Below, piece by piece: positions 8,824-19,316 of a stretch of 64,000 bases of DNA. The notes beneath the pieces were generated by a model, which ran no database searches, had not been told where the DNA came from, and saw only the letters and a list, made by a program, of their open reading frames with translations. The DNA lies in IMG/VR virus record IMGVR_UViG_3300049793_000366, positions 310,001 to 374,000 of that record. One strand, given 5' to 3'. Both the position numbers and the translations under genes were made by a program. How positions within the stretch are numbered: position 1 is the stretch's first letter; each line of letters opens with the position of its first letter.

Positions 8824-9440
8824 TGATAACTACTGATGATATCTTAACCGAAGATTACCTATTAAAGATTATTAGGGATCCTTCGCTTATAAAAGCTGAT
8901 TGGAGAGATTTAAAACTGAGGTTGATGTTATCAGACATCGACTCTCAGTTAATTCCTGATATAGATAGTATAAGGTATAAACAAGATTCTTTCTTTAAGA
9001 GAGAAGAACACTATTGGAGTATAGCATCGAAAGTTCGTATTGGTATTATAACTGGTTCTCTATCATTGAAAGCATTTGGATTTATCAGCAGAGCGGCTAA
9101 AGATGTTGATATTATAGTAAGTGATAGAGTAAAGGTAAAAGATTTAAATTTGAATCAACATAGATATCCAGAATCAGATAGTGATTTAGAATCATTGGGT
9201 TATATATCATTTACGAAGTCTGGAATCTTCGGTAGTGTTAAGGGAATGTACGAAGTTGACTTCTTCGAGAATAAAAATGCAACGTTCATTGAGAAAGATG
9301 GTTTAAAATTTCATCACCCATTTGAAGTAATGGATAAGAAATTACAAATATTACAGAACAGAGGAACTAGCGATAGAGTTAAAGATATACAGGACTTTTA
9401 TAGCTTTCGTAATGTTTTAAGAAAAAAATATTTAGTCTGA
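8823..9440 (+). CDS. Putative nucleotidyltransferase (Pol beta superfamily)
   Basis: ITGSLSL...KDVDII (GS/DxD motif) and EVDFF. Confidence 0.55.
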   Translation: MITTDDILTEDYLLKIIRDPSLIKADWRDLKLRLMLSDIDSQLIPDIDSIRYKQDSFFKREEHYWSIASKVRIGIITGSLSLKAFGFISRAAKDVDIIVSDRVKVKDLNLNQHRYPESDSDLESLGYISFTKSGIFGSVKGMYEVDFFENKNATFIEKDGLKFHHPFEVMDKKLQILQNRGTSDRVKDIQDFYSFRNVLRKKYLV

Positions 9441-9494
9441 AACCTTTGTGTACAAAGGAAAGTCCAAAAAAGATTGAATAAAATTGAAAATAAA

Positions 9495-9526
9495 TTTGCA
9501 AAACGTATTTTAGTGTTGTATATTTG
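9495..9526 (+). promoter_or_regulatory. Bacteroidota-type promoter (-33 TTTG, -7 TATATTTG) for initiator tRNA
   Basis: TTTG 9495-9498 and TATATTTG 9519-9526. Confidence 0.65.
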
Positions 9527-9611
9527 TACTCAGAAAGAAAAAAATAAAAATTTTATTTTTCTTCATTAAACAACAAAAGGGAGAAATAAAATATAATATA
9601 TATAAACATAT

Positions 9612-9683
9612 TGCGGGATAGAGCAGGGGTAGCTCGCTAGGCTCATAACCTAGAGGTCGGGTGTTCGAATCACCCTCCCGCTA
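9612..9683 (+). tRNA. tRNA-fMet (CAT), initiator-like
   Basis: Cloverleaf; 1:72 mismatch; CTAGG-CTCATAA-CCTAG. Confidence 0.85.
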
Positions 9684-9744
9684 CAAAGAATACAAAAATA
9701 TCAGTCTGGGAATCAGGACTTTAAAAGAAAAAGTAAAATTTTTC

Positions 9745-9775
9745 TTGACAATCTGAAACTTTCACCTTATATTTG
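9745..9775 (+). promoter_or_regulatory. Bacteroidota-type promoter driving the leader peptide/tRNA operon
   Basis: TTGACA at 9745 and TATATTTG at 9768-9775. Confidence 0.65.
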
Positions 9776-9888
9776 CGTAAAAATAAAGAAGTTGTTTACC
9801 TCACAAACATCAGATATAGTACGAGGTCTTGATTGAAAAAACAACTCTTAAGGAATTTAATAACAAAAACTGAATAAATAAAATAGTA

Positions 9889-10020
9889 ATGAAAACTCTA
9901 ACAGTAAATATGAATCTAAATAATACCATGACAACGGTGGTGAATATTACGTTATGTAATATTAGACCGGAATCTGGGTTAGTTCCTATTTGCCTAAAAG
10001 AGAAAGATATCATGCGATAA
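9889..10020 (+). CDS. Attenuator leader peptide, 43 aa (MKTLTVNMNLNNTMTTVVNITLCNIRPESGLVPICLKEKDIMR)
   Basis: Translated by hand; contains the antiterminator segment; composition matches the downstream tRNA set. Confidence 0.75.
   Translation: MKTLTVNMNLNNTMTTVVNITLCNIRPESGLVPICLKEKDIMR
9970..9982 (+). promoter_or_regulatory. Antiterminator segment GAATCTGGGTT(AG)
   Basis: Exact 11-nt copy of the terminator 3' arm, complementary to AACCCAGATTC at 10045-10055. Confidence 0.8.
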
Positions 10021-10043
10021 CTTATTCACAAGCAAAAAGCTCT

Positions 10044-10076
10044 AAACCCAGATTCATAAAGAATCTGGGTTTTTTT
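10044..10076 (+). terminator. Attenuator intrinsic terminator immediately before the tRNA array
   Basis: AAACCCAGATTC-ATAAA-GAATCTGGGTTT followed by TTTT. Confidence 0.9.
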
Positions 10077-10078
10077 AT

Positions 10079-10154
10079 GCCTATATAGTCCAACAAGAGC
10101 AGAGACAGTCGGCTTAAAATCGACACAGTAAGGGTTCGAACCCCTTTATAGGCA
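10079..10154 (+). tRNA. tRNA-Leu (TAA), atypical short variable loop
   Basis: GCCTATA/TATAGGC; GTCGG-CTTAAAA-TCGAC. Confidence 0.75.
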
Positions 10155-10164
10155 CAACATATAA

Positions 10165-10236
10165 GGATCAGTAGCTCAGTGGTAGAGCAAGTGACTGTTA
10201 ATCACTAGGTCGTAGGTTCAAGCCCTACCTGGTCCT
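10165..10236 (+). tRNA. tRNA-Asn (GTT), U73 discriminator
   Basis: AGTGA-CTGTTAA-TCACT; canonical D and T arms. Confidence 0.85.
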
Positions 10237-10244
10237 CAAAAAAT

Positions 10245-10323
10245 AGGTATGTACCGAGCCACACTGATAATGTGGATATTCGTAGCGGTGTTGTAAACGT
10301 GGGTTCAAATCCCACCTTACCTA
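10245..10323 (+). tRNA. D-armless tRNA-Ile (GAT)-like RNA with expanded variable region
   Basis: Acceptor AGGTATG/CTTACCT; only 7 nt before the anticodon arm CCACA-CTGATAA-TGTGG; intact T arm. Confidence 0.6.
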
Positions 10324-10331
10324 CAAAAAAT

Positions 10332-10404
10332 GCCTGAATAGCTCAGTTGGTAGAGCGTCTGATTTGTAATCAGAAGGTCGTCGGTTCGAACCCGGCTTTA
10401 GGCT
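10332..10404 (+). tRNA. tRNA-Thr (TGT)
   Basis: Canonical cloverleaf. Confidence 0.9.
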
Positions 10405-10414
10405 CAAGTTAAAT

Positions 10415-10494
10415 GCCCAGATGGTGGAATGGTAGACACGCTGGTCTAAGAAGCCAGTGCTTTTAGCGTGAGAGTTCAAGTCTCTCTTTGGGTA
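10415..10494 (+). tRNA. tRNA-Leu (AAG)
   Basis: Type II Leu body; CTGGT-CTAAGAA-GCCAG. Confidence 0.85.
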
Positions 10495-10507
10495 CGAAAT
10501 AAAATAT

Positions 10508-10581
10508 GCACTCGTGGTCTAACGGACAAGGGCGAGAGTTTTCTAAACTCTAAGGTGGGGGTTCGATTCCCTCCGAGTGTA
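10508..10581 (+). tRNA. tRNA-Arg (TCT)
   Basis: AGAGT-TTTCTAA-ACTCT. Confidence 0.85.
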
Positions 10582-10588
10582 CAAAAAT

Positions 10589-10677
10589 TGATGATTTGCC
10601 GTAGTTGGCCGAACGGTCCAGACTGTTAATCTGGTGAGCGTTATGCTCCGTCACAGGTTCGAATCCTGTATCATCAG
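10589..10677 (+). tRNA. tRNA-Asn (GTT) with long (type II) variable arm
   Basis: TGATGAT/ATCATCA plus G73; CCAGA-CTGTTAA-TCTGG; variable hairpin GAGC-GTTAT-GCTC. Confidence 0.8.
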
Positions 10678-10682
10678 CAAAT

Positions 10683-10756
10683 AGTCGGGTAGCTCAGTTG
10701 GTTAGAGCGCCACACTGATAATGTGGAGGTCGTGGGTTCAAGTCCCGCTCCGACTA
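10683..10756 (+). tRNA. tRNA-Ile (GAT)
   Basis: Canonical cloverleaf. Confidence 0.9.
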
Positions 10757-10762
10757 CTAAAT

Positions 10763-10845
10763 GACACCATGGCCGAGTGGAGCTGAAAAGCGATAGGCAT
10801 CAGTCTGCAAAACTGATTACGGGGGTTCAAATCCCTCTGGTGTCT
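10763..10845 (+). tRNA. tRNA-Cys (GCA) with hairpin insertion in the D-loop
   Basis: U73; TCAGT-CTGCAAA-ACTGA; GCT-GAAA-AGC insertion. Confidence 0.8.
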
Positions 10846-10926
10846 CAATGGGTTCGGTTTTAGTCCGAATATGATAAGATTACCTGAGGTAGAAATACTA
10901 ATCAAGGGGCACCGAAAGAATTGAAT

Positions 10927-11011
10927 GGTTGGGTGGCGAAATTGGCAGTACGCGGTAGACTTAAAATCTACTGGTTTTAACACCGTGAGGGTTCAAGTCC
11001 CTCCCCGACTA
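10927..11011 (+). tRNA. tRNA-Leu (TAA), canonical type II
   Basis: GTAGA-CTTAAAA-TCTAC with long variable arm. Confidence 0.9.
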
Positions 11012-11018
11012 CAAATGC

Positions 11019-11093
11019 GCCTTCGTAGTCCAAACGCGCAGAGACATACGCCTTAGAAGCGTAGTGTTGTGGGTTCGAATCCCACCGAAGGTA
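11019..11093 (+). tRNA. tRNA-Leu (TAG), atypical short variable loop
   Basis: TACGC-CTTAGAA-GCGTA. Confidence 0.75.
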
Positions 11094-11104
11094 CAAACAT
11101 AAAT

Positions 11105-11176
11105 GCCCTGATGGCGTAACGGCAAGCGTTATTCTTTTACATGGAATAGGTAGTGGTTCGATTCCACTTCGGGGTA
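11105..11176 (+). tRNA. tRNA-Val (TAC), divergent
   Basis: ATTCT-TTTACAT-GGAAT. Confidence 0.7.
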
Positions 11177-11182
11177 CAAAAT

Positions 11183-11257
11183 AGTTGCATAGCTCAGTTG
11201 GTTCAGAGCATCTGCCTTACAAGCAGAGGGTCGTTGGTTCGAATCCAACTGTGACTA
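11183..11257 (+). tRNA. tRNA-Val (TAC)
   Basis: Canonical cloverleaf. Confidence 0.9.
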
Positions 11258-11265
11258 CAAAAAAT

Positions 11266-11338
11266 GCCCGTATGACGTAATCGGCAGTCGTACTTGTCTC
11301 AAAAGCAAGGTGTCTTGGTTCGAATCCAAGTATGGGTA
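11266..11338 (+). tRNA. tRNA-Leu (CAA), atypical short variable loop
   Basis: CTTGT-CTCAAAA-GCAAG. Confidence 0.75.
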
Positions 11339-11341
11339 CTA

Positions 11342-11513
11342 AACCGAAAGAGATATGTAAGGAATGACATATTCTTTCACATCAATGAAGTAATGAAGAA
11401 TATTCGAATAGTTCGGATTTACTTTGAATGTGTGGGGTGATGAGAGTGGTTAAAGACCACAAGGGATGGAAACAGTCCTGATGTTTGACAAAGCTCATCG
11501 TACTCTTTTGGTT
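11342..11513 (+). ncRNA. Multibranched ncRNA of about 170 nt inside the tRNA array
   Basis: Closing helix AACCGAAAGAG/CTCTTTTGGTT; internal stems ATATGT/ACATAT, CACAT/ATGTG, GATGAG/CTCATC, GTGGT/ACCAC. Confidence 0.65.
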
Positions 11514-11517
11514 ATTT

Positions 11518-11591
11518 AGTCACATAGCTCAGTTGGTTAGAGCATTCCCTTGACATGGGAAAGGTCACAGGTTCGAATCCTGTTGCGACTA
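11518..11591 (+). tRNA. tRNA-Val (GAC)
   Basis: TTCCC-TTGACAT-GGGAA. Confidence 0.9.
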
Positions 11592-11617
11592 CAAACATAC
11601 ATGAAGTACAAGTGTAT

Positions 11618-11691
11618 GGCGCAGTAGCTTAACTGGATATAGAGCATCTCTGTTTTAGGAGAAAGGTTTGGGTTCAAATCCCTTCTGTGTA
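11618..11691 (+). pseudogene. Degenerate tRNA (6-nt anticodon loop GTTTTA)
   Basis: D arm and GGTTCAAATCC T-loop retained; imperfect stems. Confidence 0.5.
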
Positions 11692-11699
11692 AAATATTA

Positions 11700-11783
11700 G
11701 CCGATGTGGCTCAGTGGCGACAGCACTTGCCTTGTAAGCAAGTCGTGATAAACGCATCGGGGGTTCGAGTCCCTCCATCGGCT
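11700..11783 (+). tRNA. tRNA-Thr (TGT) with long variable arm
   Basis: CTTGC-CTTGTAA-GCAAG; variable hairpin CGT-GATAA-ACG. Confidence 0.8.
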
Positions 11784-11798
11784 CATAAGAAGTGTAGT

Positions 11799-11871
11799 GC
11801 TGATATAGTTCAGTTGGTAGAACGCATCCTTGGTAGGGATGAGGTGACAGGTTCGATTCCCGTTATCAGCT
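11799..11871 (+). tRNA. tRNA-Thr (GGT)
   Basis: CATCC-TTGGTAG-GGATG. Confidence 0.85.
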
Positions 11872-11883
11872 CAAAGTAAAAAT

Positions 11884-11965
11884 GCCGTTGTGAACAGATG
11901 TGGTAATTGTGTTCGGCTCATATCCGAATTGGAAACTATTGTAGGTTCGAGTCCTACCAGCGGTA
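11884..11965 (+). tRNA. tRNA-Met or Ile2 (CAT) with enlarged variable region
   Basis: TTCGG-CTCATAT-CCGAA; 12-nt variable region. Confidence 0.75.
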
Positions 11966-12004
11966 CTAACAAATAAAAATAAACAAATAAAAAACAAGAA
12001 GACA

Positions 12005-13200
12005 ATGGGAACGAAAATTTAGACCATAAGGAACTCGGAAAGCAATTAAATCTTTTTTGCTTTTCAGAAGATGTGGGTAAGGGTCTACCACTATGGTTAC
12101 CGAAAGGTGCTATAATAAGAGAGGAATTAATTTCTTATCTTAAAAAGATACAACTCAAAATGGGTTATCAAGGAGTAGTAAGTCCACATATAGCAAATGT
12201 TAAGCTATATAAAATATCAGGACACTACGACAAGTATAAGGATCACGCATTTGGAGAGATATGTTGTCCTGGTGAAGAAAGTTATATGCTTAAACCCATG
12301 AACTGCCCTCATCATTGTCAGATTTATAAAAGTGAACCTCGTTCTTATAGAGATTTACCTTTAAGATTTGCTGAGTTTGGACAAGTATATCGGTATGAAG
12401 ATAGTGGTGCTGTTAATGGTTTATTACGAGTGCGAGGATTTTGTCAAGATGATGCTCACTTATTTTGTAGACCTGACCAAGTGAAGGTTGAAATTAACAA
12501 CATAATTAAACTCGTTCTTTATGTACTGAATGAATTTGACTTTAAAGATTTTAAAGCTCAAATATCTCTAAGAGATAGTTCTGATGATAAGTATATTGGG
12601 TCAGATGAAGTTTGGGAACAAGCGGAGTCAGCACTAATAGAAGCGGCTAAAGATAATGGATTAAACTACAATATCGAAAAAGGTGAAGCCGCGTTTTATG
12701 GTCCTAAGATAGACTTCATGGTTAAGGATTGTTTGAATAGAGAATGGCAATTAGGGTCAATACAATTAGACTATAACTTACCAGATAAGTTTGAGTTAGA
12801 ATATATTGATTCGGAAGGGAAGCCGAGTAGACCAGTTATGATTCATAGAGCGCCATTTGGTTCTTTAGAAAGATTTATAGCAATTTTACTCGAACACTAT
12901 CAAGGTAGATTACCATTTTGGTTATCACCAGAACAAGTGATGATTTTACCAATATCAGAAAAGTTTAATGATTTTTCAGATAGTATAAAGTCAAGATTAT
13001 TTGATAGCGATATCAGAGCAGTTGTAGATAGTAGGAATGAAAGATTGCCTAAAAAAATAAAAGATGCTCAATTAAATTATATCCCGTATATGATTGTGAT
13101 TGGTCAGAAAGAAGTAGATAGTGGAATTTTATCAATTCGTTCAAGAGAAGGAAAAGAAGAAAAGATTGATATTGATAGTTTCATTAAAAGTGTAAAATAA
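12005..13200 (+). CDS. thrS: Threonyl-tRNA synthetase lacking the N-terminal editing domain; start apparently needs a -1 frameshift
   Basis: KPMNCPHH, YRYEDSG, RVRGFCQDDAH, AFYGPKID, MIHRAPFGSLERF; conserved DHKELGK begins at 12022, upstream of the first in-frame start (GTG 12073); ATG 12005 is out of frame. Confidence 0.9.
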
Positions 13201-13223
13201 TAATTCCACCGAAAGGTGGATAT

Positions 13224-13296
13224 GCTCTCGTAGTTTAATGGAAAGAATCACACTTTCCTAAAGTGGCGGGTAGGGGTTCGAATCCCTTCGAGAGTA
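13224..13296 (+). tRNA. tRNA-Arg (CCT)
   Basis: GCTCTCG/CGAGAGT; CACT-TTCCTAA-AGTG. Confidence 0.8.
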
Positions 13297-13300
13297 CAAC

Positions 13301-13400
13301 GCCTGGGGAAGCTCTTAGTGGTAGGTAGCACTTCAGTAGCTTATATAACAGTCGGTTATGTGACAGGAAGAGGGTGTCGGTTCAATCCCGACCTTGGGCG
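13301..13400 (+). ncRNA. tRNA-like RNA with the anticodon loop replaced by a long hairpin
   Basis: Acceptor, D and T arms present; CTTC...GAAG encloses TTATATAAC-AGTCG-GTTATGTGA. Confidence 0.6.
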
Positions 13401-13456
13401 CAATAAAAATAGAAGATTAAATAAATTAATGTCTAATAAAAATAAAAATAGAAACA

Positions 13457-14635
13457 ATGAAAGGTTGGATAAAATCAATCAGAGAGTCCAAAGGACTACA
13501 ATTTCTCGCAGTGACGGATGGGCAACATGACCACCAGCTTACAATTAAAACAGGTGAAGCATTCATTGAGGGAAATCCGAAAGTGGGTGCTTCTTTTTTT
13601 GCAGAAGGTTTTGATTCTGTAACGCCAAGAGGTCTACCGGAGTTCGTAGTGACTAAGCTGACAATAGTTGGTGAATCAGATGATACATTTCCGATTCAAC
13701 CTAAGCATCATACGCCTGAGTTCTTAAGAAGTATTCCTGAGTTAAGGGGTAAAGCAAAAGGATTTCAAGCAACATGGAAAATCAGACATCACCTAACACA
13801 AGCGATTCATCGTTTCTTAGAAGATGAAGGTTTCTATCAGTACTACACACCGATAGTTACACACGCTGATTGTGAAGGAGCTGGTGAGACATTTGATGTA
13901 AAGAGTGATTGGATGTCAGAGAAACTAACGGTGTCTGGACAGTTACATGGTGAAGTTGGTATGATGTCTTTAGGAAAGATTTATACATTCTCACCTTGTT
14001 TCAGAGCAGAGAAGTCTTTAACTAAAAAGCACTTATCTGAATTCTGGATGATTGAACCAGAAATTGCGTTCTGTGAATTAGATGAGACAGTTGAATTTGC
14101 CGAGAAATTTGTAAAGTCAATAATTAAATATGTACTCACTAAATCAGAGTATGAATTTAAGCAACTCGGAATCGACCATCAACACCTCGAACCTCTCCTG
14201 GATAAGGATTGGAAGAAAGTAAAATATGATGAAGTATGTGAAACATTTAAGCTCACTTGGGGTCACGATATTTCATCTGAAACGGAAAAAAAGATAGTCG
14301 AGAAATGGGGACCAACATTCGTTACTGAATACCCAGAAGGATTGAAACCCTTCTATATGAAGAAAGATGGTAGAGTAGCAAAATGTTTTGATTTAATTTT
14401 CCCAGAAGTGGGTGAGTTAATCGGAGGGTCACAACGAGAAGAAGACTATGATAAAATAGTTGAGCAAATGACTCAAGCACACTTGGATCTGGATAAGATG
14501 CACTGGTATTTAGCAACACGAAAATGGGGAACAGTTCCACATTCAGGGTTCGGATTAGGTTTTGAACGTTTATTAATGTTCATCACCAAAGCAACTAAAA
14601 TTCACGATGTTATTCCTTTTCCGGTGAGCTATTAA
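13457..14635 (+). CDS. asnS: Asparaginyl-tRNA synthetase
   Basis: OB-fold KGWI, CEGAGETF, LTVSGQL, FRAEKS..KHLSEFWMIEPE, GELIGGSQRE, PHSGFGLGFER. Confidence 0.92.
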   Translation: MKGWIKSIRESKGLQFLAVTDGQHDHQLTIKTGEAFIEGNPKVGASFFAEGFDSVTPRGLPEFVVTKLTIVGESDDTFPIQPKHHTPEFLRSIPELRGKAKGFQATWKIRHHLTQAIHRFLEDEGFYQYYTPIVTHADCEGAGETFDVKSDWMSEKLTVSGQLHGEVGMMSLGKIYTFSPCFRAEKSLTKKHLSEFWMIEPEIAFCELDETVEFAEKFVKSIIKYVLTKSEYEFKQLGIDHQHLEPLLDKDWKKVKYDEVCETFKLTWGHDISSETEKKIVEKWGPTFVTEYPEGLKPFYMKKDGRVAKCFDLIFPEVGELIGGSQREEDYDKIVEQMTQAHLDLDKMHWYLATRKWGTVPHSGFGLGFERLLMFITKATKIHDVIPFPVSY

Positions 14636-14652
14636 AAAATAGTAAACTAAAA

Positions 14653-14919
14653 ATGAATAATATTAATATAACAGAAATAGTAAAGAACGGAAAAACAGAA
14701 TTAACACACGCAGTAGCAGGAGTACTCTATTATAGAACTGATACCAATACACACAGTTATATCTATGTGATTGATATGAATGATAGAGAAGATGTAGGTA
14801 CTGCTACATTCGAAGCAAGGCCAAAAACCTTATATTTGATGCGTTGGATTCGAAAGTCCATAGAGAATAATACAATAATCGTAATTAAAAAGAAATACAA
14901 TGAAACTGAATCTAAATAA
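14653..14919 (+). CDS. Hypothetical phage protein
   Basis: 88-aa ORF in the aaRS operon. Confidence 0.6.
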   Translation: MNNINITEIVKNGKTELTHAVAGVLYYRTDTNTHSYIYVIDMNDREDVGTATFEARPKTLYLMRWIRKSIENNTIIVIKKKYNETESK

Positions 14920-16075
14920 AATAAAAACAACTCCGAAAGGAATGCCCTTTGGCTTCTGTGTGTATGGGAAACCTACACCAGAAGTCCAAGCATGGGCTTC
15001 GCATTGGAATATCAAAGAGCAAGAGTCGGGTCCATATACGAATTTCATCTTACCTGATGGCTTAAGTATCGAAGAGATTTTTGAAGAAGCAAAAACATAT
15101 GAGTGGGTCGATGGTTTTAGTCCAAATTTAAATAAACATTTGCACTTAGGTCACTTATCTAATCTGATTATAGCCAAAGCAATGCAGTCAATGAGTGTAG
15201 GTAAAAACTACATAGCGATATTGGGTGATACGCTGTCTGGTCAGGTTGATAAAACAGATGCCTTGAAGAAGTATAATGAATATTGTCAGAACTTCGGGTA
15301 TAATATCAATCAACTCATTTTCGCCTCAGAACAAAAATTATCAAATGATATTTTAGTTGATGGTGATGGTGAATATACGGGAACGAAAATATTCAATATC
15401 AATGAAGACAAAGTTGTAGGAATTAAAAGCGATGGTTCAACATCCTATTTCTATCAAGATGTCTCACTTGCTCAAAAGTTAAACGCACCAACGTTGTATT
15501 TAACTGGATTTGAACAAGTGGGGCATTTTTCGTTATTGAAACAATTATTCCCGCATATAGAACACATTGGTCTTGGATTGGTAACAGTAGATGGTAAAAA
15601 GATGTCTTCATCTGAGGGTAATGTAATCTTCGCAGAGGATATTTTCAATCAACTACTTGATAAATTTAGTGGTGATGAAAAATTAGTTTGGAATGTAATA
15701 GCTGGGCAAATTTTAAAATCTACACCAAATTCTGTTAAGAATATCGATATGAAGCAAATTGAAAATGTAAAACAATCTGCTGGGTTGTATATCTCTTATA
15801 CGATGGCACGTATGTGGTCAGCGGGTATTGAATACATTGAAACTGATACTATCGAGGATCCTGCTCTTCTTTTTAAATCAATGAAAGCGAAGTTTAACTT
15901 ACAACCGAATATTCTATTCGAAGAGGTAATTGAACATTGTAAGAAAATTAATAACTTATATATAACACACAAAATAAAAGACAACGATGCTAATACAAAA
16001 TTATTTCAATCACTCACCAACGATTTGGTGACAACGACTAAAAAATTAGGATTATTTAAAATAAATAAATTATGA
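14900..16075 (+). CDS. argS: Reduced arginyl-tRNA synthetase (class I)
   Basis: FSPNLNKHLHLGHL (HIGH), KSDGSTSYFYQD, KMSS, GLYISYTMAR; only 391 aa. Confidence 0.8.
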   Translation: MKLNLNKIKTTPKGMPFGFCVYGKPTPEVQAWASHWNIKEQESGPYTNFILPDGLSIEEIFEEAKTYEWVDGFSPNLNKHLHLGHLSNLIIAKAMQSMSVGKNYIAILGDTLSGQVDKTDALKKYNEYCQNFGYNINQLIFASEQKLSNDILVDGDGEYTGTKIFNINEDKVVGIKSDGSTSYFYQDVSLAQKLNAPTLYLTGFEQVGHFSLLKQLFPHIEHIGLGLVTVDGKKMSSSEGNVIFAEDIFNQLLDKFSGDEKLVWNVIAGQILKSTPNSVKNIDMKQIENVKQSAGLYISYTMARMWSAGIEYIETDTIEDPALLFKSMKAKFNLQPNILFEEVIEHCKKINNLYITHKIKDNDANTKLFQSLTNDLVTTTKKLGLFKINKL

Positions 16076-16323
16076 AAAACAAGGATGATAATTGGTATGA
16101 AAACCAAGTCCAGGATATAAAAAAGCGTAAAAGAGCTATGTGTAAAGCCATAAGTTCATTTGCGTATGGAACTGACTTTATGGGTGGAAAACTTACTAAC
16201 AAGAGAATCAAGGAGTTAAAGAATTCACTCACAAAAGAAAAGCGAGCTGCTAAACGTTCTAATAAACAATTCGTGGAAAAATTAATAGAAGATGAGATAG
16301 AAAATTTTGAGAATTCAAAATAG
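16072..16323 (+). CDS. Basic hypothetical protein
   Basis: 83-aa ORF overlapping the argS stop. Confidence 0.55.
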   Translation: MKNKDDNWYENQVQDIKKRKRAMCKAISSFAYGTDFMGGKLTNKRIKELKNSLTKEKRAAKRSNKQFVEKLIEDEIENFENSK

Positions 16324-16362
16324 TTTTTTATCTTTGTCCGGAAATGATGAATAAAAAAGAAT

Positions 16363-16528
16363 AAACCGATTGGAGGATGCGTAATTTGGTGAGCTGGGAG
16401 AGCAGCTCCGCAAGGGTACACACTTAGGATAAGTAGAAATACTCGTCTCTATCATGGTGTGTGAAGCAGGGTTAAAACAGTTTAAGACACCCACAACCAG
16501 ATTCCTGATAAAACCAAATCCATCGGTA
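16363..16528 (+). ncRNA. Structured ncRNA candidate of about 165 nt upstream of tRNA-Arg
   Basis: ACCGAT/ATCGGT and ATTTGGT/ACCAAAT closing stems, GAGCTG/CAGCTC, CACAC/GTGTG, AGTA-GAAA-TACT; own TATCTTTG promoter at 16329. Confidence 0.6.
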
Positions 16529-16534
16529 TATTTT

Positions 16535-16606
16535 GGTCTCATAGTTAAATGGATATAACAGTAGCCTTCTAAGCTTCTATTCCAGGTTCGATTCCTGGTG
16601 AGACCA
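16535..16606 (+). tRNA. tRNA-Arg (TCT)
   Basis: GGTCTCA/TGAGACC; canonical Arg D-loop. Confidence 0.9.
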
Positions 16607-17099
16607 CAAAACCAGAGTGTATTTCTCTGTGACAATTTGAACAGACTAACGCACATTTATCAAGTTCTATTTTGGCGTTGTTGTCAAATTTCCAAAGTCT
16701 TCGGTGTGCTATTGTGAAATCTTTATGTTCTGGTTCAATGTGATGAAATTCAAGTGATGCGTAACACCTATTGTAACCACACAACACGCAATTACCACCT
16801 TTGTATTCAAGACATTTTATTTTAAAAGCTCTCTGTCTTTCGATAGTTTGTTCAGTGGTACAAATTTTACAATATGTTAATAGCTTATTAGAGTTTTTTC
16901 TTTTATAAAACTCATCGACTGGTAAATGTGAGTCACATCTTTTGCAATATTTAATATCAGTATAATTAACCGGATTCGTCTTAAGTTCATATTTATTTAG
17001 CCAGTATTTTACTGTACCATATGAGCATTTCAATTCTTTAGCAATTTTACGTATTGATATATTTTTATCCACTAATTTTTGTAAATCTTCTTTAAGCAT
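16569..17099 (-). mobile_element. HNH homing endonuclease with N-terminal HTH
   Basis: SIRKIAKELKCSYGTVKYWL HTH; CVLCGY..SLEFHH..CALVCSNCHREIH; likely start at 17099. Confidence 0.85.
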
Positions 17100-17192
17100 T
17101 AAACAAACATCATTTATTTGTATATATTTGTATCTCAAAATGAAAAAAATATATTTTTGGCACATTGTCCGAAAATGTTTAATTTTACAAAT

Positions 17193-17402
17193 ATGACAAA
17201 CAAAGATTTACAAAAAGTAGCATTCATATCATTTATAGTTTGCTTTCTTGGTATAACATTCTTTTTCGGGATGTTAGCATCAATACATCCAGCCGTTAAA
17301 GTAACATTAACGGCTTTCTTTATGCAGATGCTTATGATATCACTAACATGGTCAGCATTTATGACCTTAACTTATAGAATTGCATATGGAAAAAAGAAGT
17401 AA
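17193..17402 (+). CDS. Small membrane protein
   Basis: Two hydrophobic segments. Confidence 0.5.
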   Translation: MTNKDLQKVAFISFIVCFLGITFFFGMLASIHPAVKVTLTAFFMQMLMISLTWSAFMTLTYRIAYGKKK

Positions 17403-17787
17403 ACAAATAATCGTAATGCGTAAAGACCTTAATATGCGTAAAGGTAAAATGGTCGCTCAAGGCGCACACGCATCTATGAAAGCAGTTTTAGACATGGGTA
17501 ATTTTAAACGTGAGTCTAAATTAAACTTCGTTCTGGAAATTGAAGAAGAGTCTGCTGTGATGAATTGGTTAGAAGGTAAGTTTACTAAAATTTGTGTATC
17601 AGTTGATTCGGAAGAAGAATTGATGGCAGTTTATGAACAGGCTAAAAATGTTGGTCTTCCTGTTGGTCTTATTACGGACTCTGGACTTACTGAATTCAAT
17701 GGTGTTCCAACCTTAACTTGTTGTGCTATCGGACCCGCCTGGGCAGAAGATATTGACAAAGTTACCAACAATCTAAAACTTCTATAA
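17380..17787 (+). CDS. pth2: Peptidyl-tRNA hydrolase type 2
   Basis: KQIIVMRKDLNMRKGKMVAQGAHA, KICV, DSGLTEF, TCCAIGP. Confidence 0.92.
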   Translation: MHMEKRSKQIIVMRKDLNMRKGKMVAQGAHASMKAVLDMGNFKRESKLNFVLEIEEESAVMNWLEGKFTKICVSVDSEEELMAVYEQAKNVGLPVGLITDSGLTEFNGVPTLTCCAIGPAWAEDIDKVTNNLKLL

Positions 17788-17945
17788 TGAAACTTCTAAT
17801 AATGCAGTGTACACATAGTAATTTTTGGTATGCTGACTTAATCGGAATTGAATTCGATATAGTTAGTGAATCTGTTAGAGATTACAATGTAGTACACAAT
17901 GGTACTATTAAGAGTATTCTCAAAATAGATGCTGTAAACATATAA

Positions 17946-18017
17946 GGGCAGGTGGACGAGAGAAATAGTCGGAAGCCCGCAAAGCTTCATACGGTGGTTC
18001 AATTCCATCCCTGCCCT
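17946..18017 (+). tRNA. tRNA-Cys (GCA) with C33
   Basis: GGGCAGG/CCTGCCC plus U73; GAAGC-CCGCAAA-GCTTC. Confidence 0.75.
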
Positions 18018-18031
18018 CTAAATTTAACGCA

Positions 18032-18307
18032 ATGTTTTTAAGCTTTAATGAATTAAACTTCACTGACCAAGTTATAATTGACTCATATATAAATATGGGA
18101 TATACACAACTGAATGGTGTTACCGCAAGTAACCCACATCTTTCTAAACAAGAATCCGGTAAGGAACTTATTCTAATGAGAGATTATAGTGGTATGTGGA
18201 CAGAAGCAATAGTTGATAATACACAGCAATTTAAATTACCAATACCGACTATATCATATACACCACAAGAGCTTTTAAGAAAATTACAAATCGATAAATT
18301 AATATAA
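18032..18307 (+). CDS. Hypothetical protein with C-terminal R-motif (RKLQIDKLI)
   Basis: 91-aa ORF. Confidence 0.6.
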   Translation: MFLSFNELNFTDQVIIDSYINMGYTQLNGVTASNPHLSKQESGKELILMRDYSGMWTEAIVDNTQQFKLPIPTISYTPQELLRKLQIDKLI

Positions 18308-18308
18308 A

Positions 18309-19316
18309 ATGGAATTTAGTAAACTATTAGTGGACAAAATCTCAGCAATTAAGGATAACAAAATTGCAACTATCATACTTGATAAGTATGATGATATCTA
18401 TGACGCACCATTTGATTATATCAATACAGGGTCGCGTAATGATTTGATTTCATTTTTACCGGAGAGTAAGCAAGAGAAGGCTTCTGAGAATGGTGATGAA
18501 TGGTCAGACTATCGCAATGAAGTTAAAGTTGGTAGATTTGTAAAACAATTCTTACACGAATTAGGTGATATTACTATATCATATACCGACCAGGACGTTG
18601 AAGATTTTGTAAATAAGTTTAAAGCCGCATCCACTAATGAGAACTATAAATTTGAAATAGTAGAGGGTGAAGATATCAGAACATGGTATTTAGATGATAA
18701 CTACGTTGAGTGTGGATATGGTTCCTTAATGGACTCGTGTATGAAAGATGAATACAAACAAAAGTATTTATCGCTATATGCTAAAAATAAAAAACAAATT
18801 AAATTAGTTTGTTTAATTGATAAAGAAAGTGACCTATTAATGGGTAGAGCATTATTATGGACATTAGATGAAAGTCCAAGTCCAAGTAAATTATTTATGG
18901 ATAGAGTTTATGTAGCAGAAGAATATTTATTCGAGCTATTTAAACAAAAGGCAGAAGAAGAAGAGTGGATGTATAAAGCTAATCAGTCAAATGATATAGC
19001 AAGAGGACAAGAATTTATCCACAAAGGTAAAAAATATCAAGGCTTAGCTAAAGTAAAATTATCAAAGTGGAGATTAAGCTACTATCCATATGTTGACTCT
19101 ATGACCTTCTTTAACGAGAAGAAAGGTGTCCTATTAAACAGAGGATTTAAAAATGCATTTCAATTACGCTCAGTAGATGGTGACGGATCTAATTGTTGTG
19201 ACTCATGTTCCGGTAAATGGGAATATGATTGTGACGACTGTTATGGTGAAGACACAAGCTGTGAAAACTGTGAGGGTAAAGGTGTGATTAAATGTGAAGA
19301 GTGTAACTTTGGATAA
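18309..19316 (+). CDS. SCM/RALLW/MDRxY family protein, paralog 1, with C-terminal Zn finger
   Basis: Shares motifs with ORFs at 23132 and 53520; four CxxC pairs at the C-terminus. Confidence 0.7.
   Translation: MEFSKLLVDKISAIKDNKIATIILDKYDDIYDAPFDYINTGSRNDLISFLPESKQEKASENGDEWSDYRNEVKVGRFVKQFLHELGDITISYTDQDVEDFVNKFKAASTNENYKFEIVEGEDIRTWYLDDNYVECGYGSLMDSCMKDEYKQKYLSLYAKNKKQIKLVCLIDKESDLLMGRALLWTLDESPSPSKLFMDRVYVAEEYLFELFKQKAEEEEWMYKANQSNDIARGQEFIHKGKKYQGLAKVKLSKWRLSYYPYVDSMTFFNEKKGVLLNRGFKNAFQLRSVDGDGSNCCDSCSGKWEYDCDDCYGEDTSCENCEGKGVIKCEECNFG

Follow-up and report, generated by a model that had tools for sequence, protein, structure and literature searches.

A putative leader-peptide attenuator ahead of a phage tRNA array, with related leaders in megaphages and cultured flavobacterial phages

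Introduction

Leader-peptide attenuation is a textbook mechanism for the control of amino-acid biosynthesis and of a few synthetase genes. The pheM leader of the E. coli pheST genes, for example, forms an attenuator of phenylalanyl-tRNA synthetase, which senses one amino acid and controls only the synthetase. Phage tRNA arrays are viewed as complements to codon usage or as replacements for tRNAs destroyed during infection. To our knowledge, leader-peptide attenuation has been described neither for tRNA genes nor for viruses. Here, we analyze a stretch of 64,000 nucleotides (nt) from the IMG/VR virus record IMGVR_UViG_3300049793_000366 (508 kb; positions 310,001 to 374,000, hereafter the window), in which a short open reading frame (ORF) and an intrinsic terminator precede an array of tRNA genes, and compare this leader-terminator element with its relatives in other phages.

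The enterobacterial leader attenuators (trp, his, thr, leu, pheA, ilvGMEDA, and ilvBN) resemble the element in having a short promoter-proximal ORF, cognate regulatory codons, and an intrinsic terminator before the structural genes. They also share with it an exclusive antiterminator, with an upstream strand that the ribosome covers unless it stalls, and, as in ilv and thr, the sensing of several amino acids. A preliminary description of this DNA had proposed a geometry of the trp/thr/his type, and its parts (i.e. a conserved ORF, cognate codons, a terminator, and an exclusive antiterminator) were all recovered at the level of sequence and predicted structure. We consider it likely that the element is a ribosome-mediated (leader-peptide) transcription attenuator, which couples the tRNA array, and probably also the genes for threonyl-tRNA synthetase (ThrRS) and asparaginyl-tRNA synthetase (AsnRS), to decoding capacity.

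Results

Leader ORF and sensor codons

The promoter, the 43-codon ORF, and the terminator 2 nt before the first tRNA gene were found where the preliminary description had placed them (Table 1). The leader also reads as quoted there: up to the antiterminator strand (region 2) it contains six Thr, six Asn, three Met, three Val, three Leu, and two Ile residues as well as one Cys, one Arg, and one Lys. Anticodons of the downstream array can read 24 of the 25 sensor codons, or 23 of 25 if only tRNAs called by ARAGORN are counted. Given a decodable fraction of 0.326 in neighbouring long ORFs, such a match has a probability of P ~3.5e-11. It is specific to the frame; only 5 and 6 of the 25 codons are decodable in frames +1 and +2, respectively.

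A TAnnTTTG box is kept 5′ of all homologous leaders described below. Inside the window's array, no + strand TAnnTTTG box is present, and the next one on this strand occurs only at 12786. This agrees with the expectation that the array is not read from an internal promoter. A further conserved box, TTTTAATATATA, was observed 10-20 nt 5′ of leader start codons in megaphages, and also directly before a stand-alone tRNA-Met of the megaphage LR745206.1; it is missing from the window's own leader. This box could represent a second (phage-specific?) promoter element or an initiation signal.

The leader also contains a hairpin within its sensor codons, which is present in all predicted folds. Homologues show a compensatory T-A to A-T swap in this hairpin (AATA[T]TAC..GTA[A]TATT versus AATA[A]TAC..GTA[T]TATT or GTATTA, with swapped bases in brackets); its 5′ arm lies inside the 22-mer used for their retrieval, its 3′ arm outside. 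The hairpin is a candidate RNA polymerase pause site or ribosome-timing element.

Table 1. Features of the leader-terminator element, the tRNA array, and the neighbouring translation genes in the window
Feature	Position	Strand	Basis
Promoter, sigma-70-like (TTGACA at 9745-9750, 17-nt spacer, TATATT)	9745-9773	+	11/12 match; top-scoring site in 8-19 kb
Bacteroidota-type -7 box TATATTTG	9768-9775	+	Overlaps TATATT of the sigma-70-like promoter
Leader ORF, 43 codons and TAA	9889-10020	+	Open in 61/61 unique homologues
Sensor codons 2-26 (Thr, Asn, Met, Val, Leu, Ile, Cys, Arg)	9892-9966	+	24/25 decodable by the array
In-leader hairpin AATATTAC / GTTAT / GTAATATT, within codons 19-25	9943-9963	+	Present in all predicted folds
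Region 2, putative antiterminator strand; exact copy of terminator 3′ arm, codons 28-31	9970-9980	+	Duplex energy, 11-mer uniqueness, covariation
Region 3, terminator 5′ arm; pairs with region 2 or region 4	10044-10055	+	Predicted folds
Region 4, terminator 3′ arm and T7 tract; ends 2 nt before first tRNA	10061-10076	+	Sequence; 11-bp RNAalifold consensus stem
Putatively regulated tRNA array, 17 ARAGORN calls and 2 aberrant tRNA-like genes	10079-11966	+	ARAGORN, Rfam
thrS without N-terminal domains	12073-13200	+	NCBIfam TIGR00418, 517.9 bits, over cut-off; Pfam agrees
tRNA-Arg(cct), behind thrS	13224-13297	+	
asnS	13457-14635	+	NCBIfam TIGR00457, 389 bits, over cut-off; Pfam agrees
Weak ArgRS-like class I protein	14900-16075		TIGR00456, 43 bits only
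tRNA-Arg(tct), isolated; within translation-gene cluster 12073-18018	16535-16607		
PTH2 peptidyl-tRNA hydrolase	17380-17787		114 bits
tRNA-Cys, end of translation-gene cluster 12073-18018	17946 (start)		

Terminator and alternative folds

The predicted intrinsic terminator consists of a 12-bp stem and a 5-nt loop at 10044-10072, followed by a T-run to 10076, with the first tRNA starting at 10079. An exact copy of its 3′ arm had been reported inside the leader ORF, and the search of the whole window bore this out: there are three copies of the 11-mer GAATCTGGGTT in 64 kb, located at 9970-9980, at 10045-10055 (as reverse complement), and at 10061-10071, i.e. exclusively within the leader-terminator element. 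Its expected count is 0.03, and three copies were reached in none of 100 shuffles. The duplex between regions 2 and 3 has a predicted energy of -18.5 kcal/mol (z = -5.7; matched in 0 of 300 shuffles), compared with approximately -16 for the terminator hairpin.

Folding predictions are consistent with mutually exclusive helices, as had been anticipated. For transcripts ending at 10056-10060, all 11 pairs between regions 2 and 3 were in the predicted minimum-energy fold when the ribosome was absent or modelled as stalled at codon 13. With a ribosome placed at codon 30, covering the transcript up to 9988, no such pair was left in the constrained fold. Thus, in these models a stalled ribosome frees region 2 and a non-stalled one masks it, which is the geometry that attenuation requires. 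For the full-length transcript, the terminator conformer was predicted to be favoured (-48.9 vs -42.9). An anti-antiterminator (1:2 pairing) was also considered and rejected; the full-length fold showed nothing more than a weak pairing beside region 2.

Homologous leaders and covariation

An exact 22-mer of the leader served as the query for homologues. This search yielded 7 IMG/VR and 73 metagenome loci, to which the window and two GenBank loci were added. The motif occurred 82 times in this set, in 74 cases with a complete unit, which gave 61 unique sequences. At the leader locus, the closest relatives in GenBank are two uncultured megaphages, LR756502.1 (642 kb) and LR745206.1 (635 kb), which originate from a French lake and a Japanese subsurface sample (PMC9723777). 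Bacteroidetes were the predicted host for all phages larger than 634 kb in the set of Al-Shayeb et al. (PMC7162821). Among approximately 185k bacterial and archaeal species genomes, the leader motif was absent, so that neither a cellular counterpart nor a hint at the host was obtained.

All 61 unique homologues have an open ORF, an ATG start, and a stop codon between region 2 and the terminator, 17-33 nt 5′ of the terminator stem. Indels among the leaders are multiples of 3. The residues before region 2 are restricted to M, K, R, T, N, L, I, V, and C in 1385 of 1386 cases. In LR756502.1, we noted a 67-codon ORF between the terminator of the Asn/Thr leader and the first tRNA; an attenuator at this position would control both the ORF and the array.

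Four terminator cores were found among the homologues (CCCTCAG, CCCGAAC, CCCAGATTC, and CCCAATTC), and region 2 matches each of them. Of the 61 sequences, 60 form base pairs at both positions 5′ to GGG, with G-C (50), T-A (9), or C-G (1) at one position and A-T (51), C-G (7), or T-A (2) at the other. Region 2 pairs with its own terminator arm at 10.9/14, and mostly at 5.8-9 in pairings across stem types. Predicted energies of the 2:3 duplexes in this Asn/Thr family range from -15.6 to -26.1 kcal/mol, with one outlier at -11.6. RNAalifold returned a terminator consensus with an 11-bp stem, in which four pairs are altered on both sides. Since the MAFFT alignment of the 61 leaders had not kept region 2 of the less common stem types in the same columns, RNAalifold recovered the terminator only, and the 2:3 pairs were therefore counted in register by a script (one sequence was mis-anchored in this count). 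The peptide encoded over region 2 varies (SEG, ESG, GSG, or GLG) along with the stem type, which argues for selection on RNA pairing and not on the peptide. On this comparative evidence, the mutually exclusive 2:3 and 3:4 helices are real.

Paralogous leaders in the megaphages

We also analyzed 150 kb of LR745206.1 and 100 kb of LR756502.1 for further units. Seven multi-tRNA arrays were examined per genome; six of the seven LR756502.1 units lie within the 100-kb stretch, and the seventh (Asn/Thr) was taken from a separate locus of the same phage. A short ORF and an intrinsic terminator were found 5′ of each examined array (7 + 7), and the ORF is enriched in codons of its own array. In addition to the Asn/Thr unit, the leader cores comprise (i) QQIQQQQ or QQQQQQQ, before Gln tRNAs; (ii) SYESYYEE, before Glu and Tyr; (iii) His, Lys, and Phe codons with one Trp codon, before His, Phe, Trp, and Lys; (iv) a Ser run with CGN Arg codons, before Arg(acg/tcg) and Ser(tga); (v) ATA, Gly, and Ala codons, before Ile(tat) and Gly, with Gly(gcc) and Ala further downstream; and (vi) PQPQDQD, before Pro and Asp. 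Codon choice tracks the isoacceptor: for Arg, CGN goes with Arg(acg/tcg) and AGA with Arg(tct); for Ile, ATA goes with Ile(tat) and ATT with Ile(gat).

Leader composition had been expected to track array content in related phages, and this was what the permutation analysis returned. The true pairing of leaders and arrays was the unique best of 5040 permutations in each genome. Amino-acid concordance was 0.415, against a permutation mean of 0.163, in one genome and 0.356, against 0.148, in the other; for codon/anticodon concordance with conservative wobble, the values were 0.356 vs 0.131 and 0.330 vs 0.118, with 0.08-0.17 in frames +1 and +2. Twenty further units outside the Asn/Thr family, from metagenome loci, were concordant as well; one more call was a false positive inside a tRNA.

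The leaders begin with M-[KRTN]-[TN]-x-[NT]-x-N throughout. This shared N-terminus appears to be a trait of a paralogous family and is perhaps an initiation module. In all leader families, a candidate region 2 is located 3′ of the sensor codons, within the 3′ portion of the ORF. Compensatory changes between the genomes were also found outside the Asn/Thr family (AGATTCGA/TCGAATCT vs AGGTTCGA/TCGAACTT; GTTCGG/CCGAAC vs TCGATTCGA/TCGAATTGA). In most units, 2-25 nt separate the end of the terminator from the first tRNA. The multi-leader system is thus shown in these relatives, and for the window's own genome this one unit was identified; searches with patterns taken from the Gln and the His/Phe/Lys leaders did not retrieve its contig, the second pattern being too short and yielding mostly chance matches.

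Leaders in cultured flavobacterial phages

Similar units are present in cultured phages. In Cellulophaga phage phi4:1_13 (KT962245.1), a leader with the run QRLHLQELEQP and a terminator precede an array of Pro, Glu, Gln, His, Leu(tag), Leu(taa), and Arg(acg); these 11 consecutive codons span all seven tRNAs of the array. A second leader of this phage (Phi4113_075), rich in Thr, Lys, Gly, Ile, Asp, Ala, Val, and AGA codons, stands before Ala, Lys, Ile, Gly, Met, Asp, Thr, Val, and Arg(tct), and a third, with Tyr, Asn, Ser, Trp, and Phe codons, before Tyr, Ser, Asn, Trp, and Phe. The Pro-Glu-Gln-His-Leu-Leu-Arg(acg) array, together with a leader run of QRLHLQELEQP or QRLHQELEQP, was found in phi4:1, phi17:2, and Maribacter phage Panino. 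As the leaders follow a grouping of tRNAs that differs from that of the megaphages, the cultured phages count as independent support. Their region 2 candidates have predicted energies of -9.9 to -17.6 kcal/mol. The design is not universal among tRNA-bearing phages; the array of Sphingomonas phage PAU has no such leader or terminator.

Several of these leader ORFs are annotated as hypothetical proteins (Phi4113_075, Phi17:2_gp077, and PANI_CDS0063), some with mis-set starts. In the cultured phages, the TAnnTTTG box lies about 5-8 nt 5′ of the leader start codon, a spacing that suggests nearly leaderless mRNAs.

tRNA array and neighbouring genes

ARAGORN called Thr x3, Asn x2, Met, Val x3, Leu x5, Ile, and Arg(tct) in the window's array, plus a tRNA whose anticodon is 2 nt long. 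The array content given in the preliminary description stands for Thr, Asn, Met, Val, Leu, one Ile, and Arg(tct); the second Ile and the Cys, taken up again in the Discussion, are aberrant tRNA-like genes, detected solely by Rfam or relaxed ARAGORN. Both of these carry an extra arm that resembles an anticodon stem-loop (Ile-GAT-like and Cys-GCA-like, respectively). Abnormal tRNAs of the array are located at 10245-10323, 10763-10846, 10589-10678, 11617-11693, 11700-11784, and 11884-11966. The tRNAs for Asn, Thr, and Met measure 83-90 nt, and odd tRNA-like elements homologous to those of the window recur in LR745206.1 and in IMG/VR loci. tRNA introns have been reported in Lak megaphages (PMC6784885). 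Two stretches of the array, 10851-10926 and 11340-11517, were not recognized as tRNA by ARAGORN or Rfam; relaxed ARAGORN gave a single poor intron-containing call in the latter.

ThrRS and AsnRS had been assigned to genes downstream of the array, and the family matches of thrS and asnS corroborate both assignments. The + strand showed no terminator-like site between the array and thrS, tRNA-Arg(cct), and asnS, and these three genes (12073-14635) are probable downstream members of the array's transcription unit. The isolated tRNAs of the window (starting at 13224, 16535, and 17946) are set among protein genes, and none of them has its own leader or terminator. Overlapping the 3′ end of the isolated tRNA-Arg(tct), a 198-aa ORF on the - strand (16569-17165) shows weak helix-turn-helix matches and Cys/His motifs like those of HNH nucleases; it may be a homing-endonuclease-like insertion beside the tRNA. 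Just 5′ of a leader unit, both the window (9519-9684) and LR745206.1 contain a stand-alone tRNA-Met(cat), which has a TATATTTG box of its own but neither leader nor terminator. This gene is apparently unregulated and is possibly an initiator tRNA.

Discussion

Proposed mechanism

The anatomy of the element, the covariation of its alternative helices, and the frame-specific match between leader codons and array can be read from the sequences themselves. From these, we infer that the leader is translated, in which direction the switch works, that the in-leader hairpin has a role in pausing, and that the synthetase genes are co-transcribed. Transcription would begin near 9770, and the 43-codon leader would be translated. 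With ample aminoacyl-tRNAs for Thr, Asn, Met, Val, Leu, Ile, and Arg(AGA), the ribosome would pass codons 2-26 and, during synthesis of regions 3 and 4 by the polymerase, cover region 2 or sit between it and region 3. With region 2 masked, the terminator (10044-10076) would fold and the transcript would stop 2 nt before the first tRNA. If any sensed tRNA were scarce or uncharged, the ribosome would stall 5′ of region 2, which would then be free to capture the 5′ arm of the terminator; no terminator would form and the array would be transcribed. As the products are the sensed molecules, such a circuit would constitute negative feedback, i.e. a homeostatic loop. Because terminators lie so close to the first tRNA in most units and the window's array lacks an internal + strand TAnnTTTG box, array transcripts must pass the terminator. 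The relatives would have one sensor per tRNA group, with a module of different sensor codons before each multi-tRNA array examined.

A number of points weigh against this interpretation. The proposal that the leader codons mirror the array held for 24 of the 25 sensor codons, and it did not hold for the AAA (Lys) codon 2, which has no sound cognate tRNA in the array. Moreover, the leaders of all arrays share an Asn/Thr/Ile-rich N-terminus (M-K/R/T-T-x-N-x-N), so that part of the Asn/Thr richness of the window's leader is a family trait and not specific to its array. The second Ile (10245-10323) and the Cys (10763-10846) are uncertain calls with ambiguous anticodons. Conservation of the 22-mer is given by construction, because the homologues were fetched with exactly this sequence, and the two permutation tests are not independent, because both megaphage genomes are related. 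For small arrays, matching residues make up only 15-48% of the leader. In the leader families other than Asn/Thr, the putative antiterminators are short and pair weakly (-9.6 to -14.6 kcal/mol, z from -1.2 to -3.3); several were matched or beaten by 5-11% of shuffles, and they mostly invade only the upper terminator stem. Finally, the predicted folds contain no convincing 1:2 anti-antiterminator, and the ribosome-free model predicts read-through, unlike the trp paradigm.

Alternative explanations

One alternative is that an unrelated small gene with an insulating terminator happens to precede an array that is read from elsewhere, the codon match being due to chance or AT-bias. The AT-rich genome (GC 0.32-0.37) does favour Asn, Ile, Lys, and Thr codons, and TAnnTTTG boxes occur in the window at chance frequency (91 observed vs 90.3 expected). 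This explanation is already strongly disfavoured, and we regard it as the least probable of all: against it stand the very low probability of the window's match under local codon usage, the uniquely best pairing of leaders and arrays, the covariation of region 2 with the terminator, and the lack of space for a promoter between terminator and tRNA. AT-bias also gives no explanation for matches that recur for Gln, Tyr/Glu, His/Phe/Trp/Lys, Arg(CGN)/Ser, Gly/Ala, and Pro/Asp arrays. Scarcely more probable is a translation-independent RNA sensor, in which leader codons pair directly with anticodons in the manner of a T-box specifier and the ORF is incidental. The sensed molecules would indeed be tRNAs, and an output through a terminator and an antiterminator is also T-box-like. 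However, the leader (Rfam search of 9000-19000, E up to 1) matches neither a T-box nor another Rfam family, the anticodon match is strictly frame-specific, ATG and pre-terminator stop are kept in 61/61 homologues, and indels come in multiples of 3. A single specifier is likewise incompatible with many codons that are used one to six times each. In a reversed coupling, array transcription would rise with good decoding, because efficient leader translation promotes read-through (pyrBI-like, a ribosome close behind hindering the terminator or pushing the polymerase) or because stalling triggers Rho-type termination. Such a model would find room in the weak antiterminators of the other families, for which another ribosome-dependent mechanism is conceivable. 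We consider it improbable, if somewhat less so than the two preceding explanations, since a stop codon 17-33 nt 5′ of the stem is too distant for a terminating ribosome to cover the stem, the strong co-varying 2:3 pairing would have no role, and positive feedback on tRNA supply would be unstable.

A different question is what an attenuator as proposed here would be selected for. Phage tRNAs can compensate for tRNA cleavage by host defences, and the same circuit might have been selected for inducible counter-defence: defences that deplete tRNAs would stall the ribosome, and the phage would make replacement tRNAs. Depletion of any sensed tRNA would trigger the circuit, each array has its own sensor, and genes for PTH2 peptidyl-tRNA hydrolase and aminoacyl-tRNA synthetases lie in the same cluster. 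The sequences, however, contain no pointer to defence over ordinary supply and demand (e.g. AT-rich phage codon usage against the host tRNA pool, or decay of host tRNAs), the sensors span nearly all amino acids and not the few anticodons targeted by known nucleases, and the design would also answer amino-acid starvation. We therefore regard selection for counter-defence as possible but doubtful. As the circuit would answer any decoding shortage, supply-and-demand homeostasis is at least as likely. Equally tentative is the broader view that Bacteroidota phages, from 77-kb flavobacterial phages to megaphages of more than 630 kb, share an ancient leader-per-array autoregulation, a genome-wide, codon-resolved monitor of decoding that serves mainly as a sensor-coupled counter-defence for the inducible replacement of tRNAs destroyed by host defences or shut-off.

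Significance

If the leader-peptide attenuator proposed here is correct, phage tRNA arrays would not be passive cargo but organs under homeostatic control, each group of tRNAs having its own sensor, and the identity of product and sensed molecule would make for an unusually direct feedback loop. This would bear on why large phages carry tRNAs and synthetases, on their ways of dealing with host tRNA pools, starvation, and defences that target tRNAs, and on the coupling of transcription and translation in Bacteroidota. It would also supply an annotation rule, by which a short ORF and a terminator before an array predict the isoacceptors of the array, and several hypothetical proteins would be reassigned as leaders. 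For synthetic biology, the leaders might serve as ready-made, codon-specific sensors of translation speed. Since the design is present in cultured Cellulophaga and Maribacter phages, it is directly testable.

Comparison with known systems

Searches of 9000-19000 against Rfam (E up to 1) returned tRNA hits and weak sub-threshold matches in the array and downstream genes, none of which overlaps the leader, and four leader peptides had no family match in Pfam (E up to 10). The preliminary description knew of no attenuator controlling a phage tRNA array, and leader peptides or attenuators before such arrays were likewise not described in the literature searched (full text; not exhaustive), including papers on Lak phages, huge phages, marine megaphages, and viral tRNA clusters.

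For the phage element, neither a clear 1:2 anti-antiterminator nor a sequence match to the leader families of Rfam (Thr_leader, His_leader, Leu_leader, Trp_leader, etc.) or Pfam was found. Unlike the enterobacterial leaders, it is viral, belongs to a paralogous set with one leader per tRNA array, and has tRNAs (and synthetases) as its targets in place of biosynthetic enzymes, so that the sensed species would be the product. Up to about eight amino acids would be sensed, at codon/anticodon resolution. With pheST it shares a component of the translation apparatus under charged-tRNA control, and the window's unit probably controls thrS and asnS as well; it differs in that tRNA genes are the primary targets and the leader mirrors a whole array. 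T-box riboswitches similarly read the status of specific tRNAs and switch between terminator and antiterminator before translation-related genes. They bind uncharged tRNA directly via one specifier codon and without translation, whereas the phage element has a frame-specific ORF and no T-box motif. Known phage tRNA arrays have the same cargo and the same presumed benefit, i.e. sustained translation of phage mRNA; in the literature searched they are cargo without a dedicated sensor, whereas here each array would have a cis-acting sensor of its own codons. Thus, the class of mechanism is known, and, as far as can be told, the new aspects are the tRNA target, the viral setting, the modularity of one sensor per array, and the feedback in which the product is the signal.

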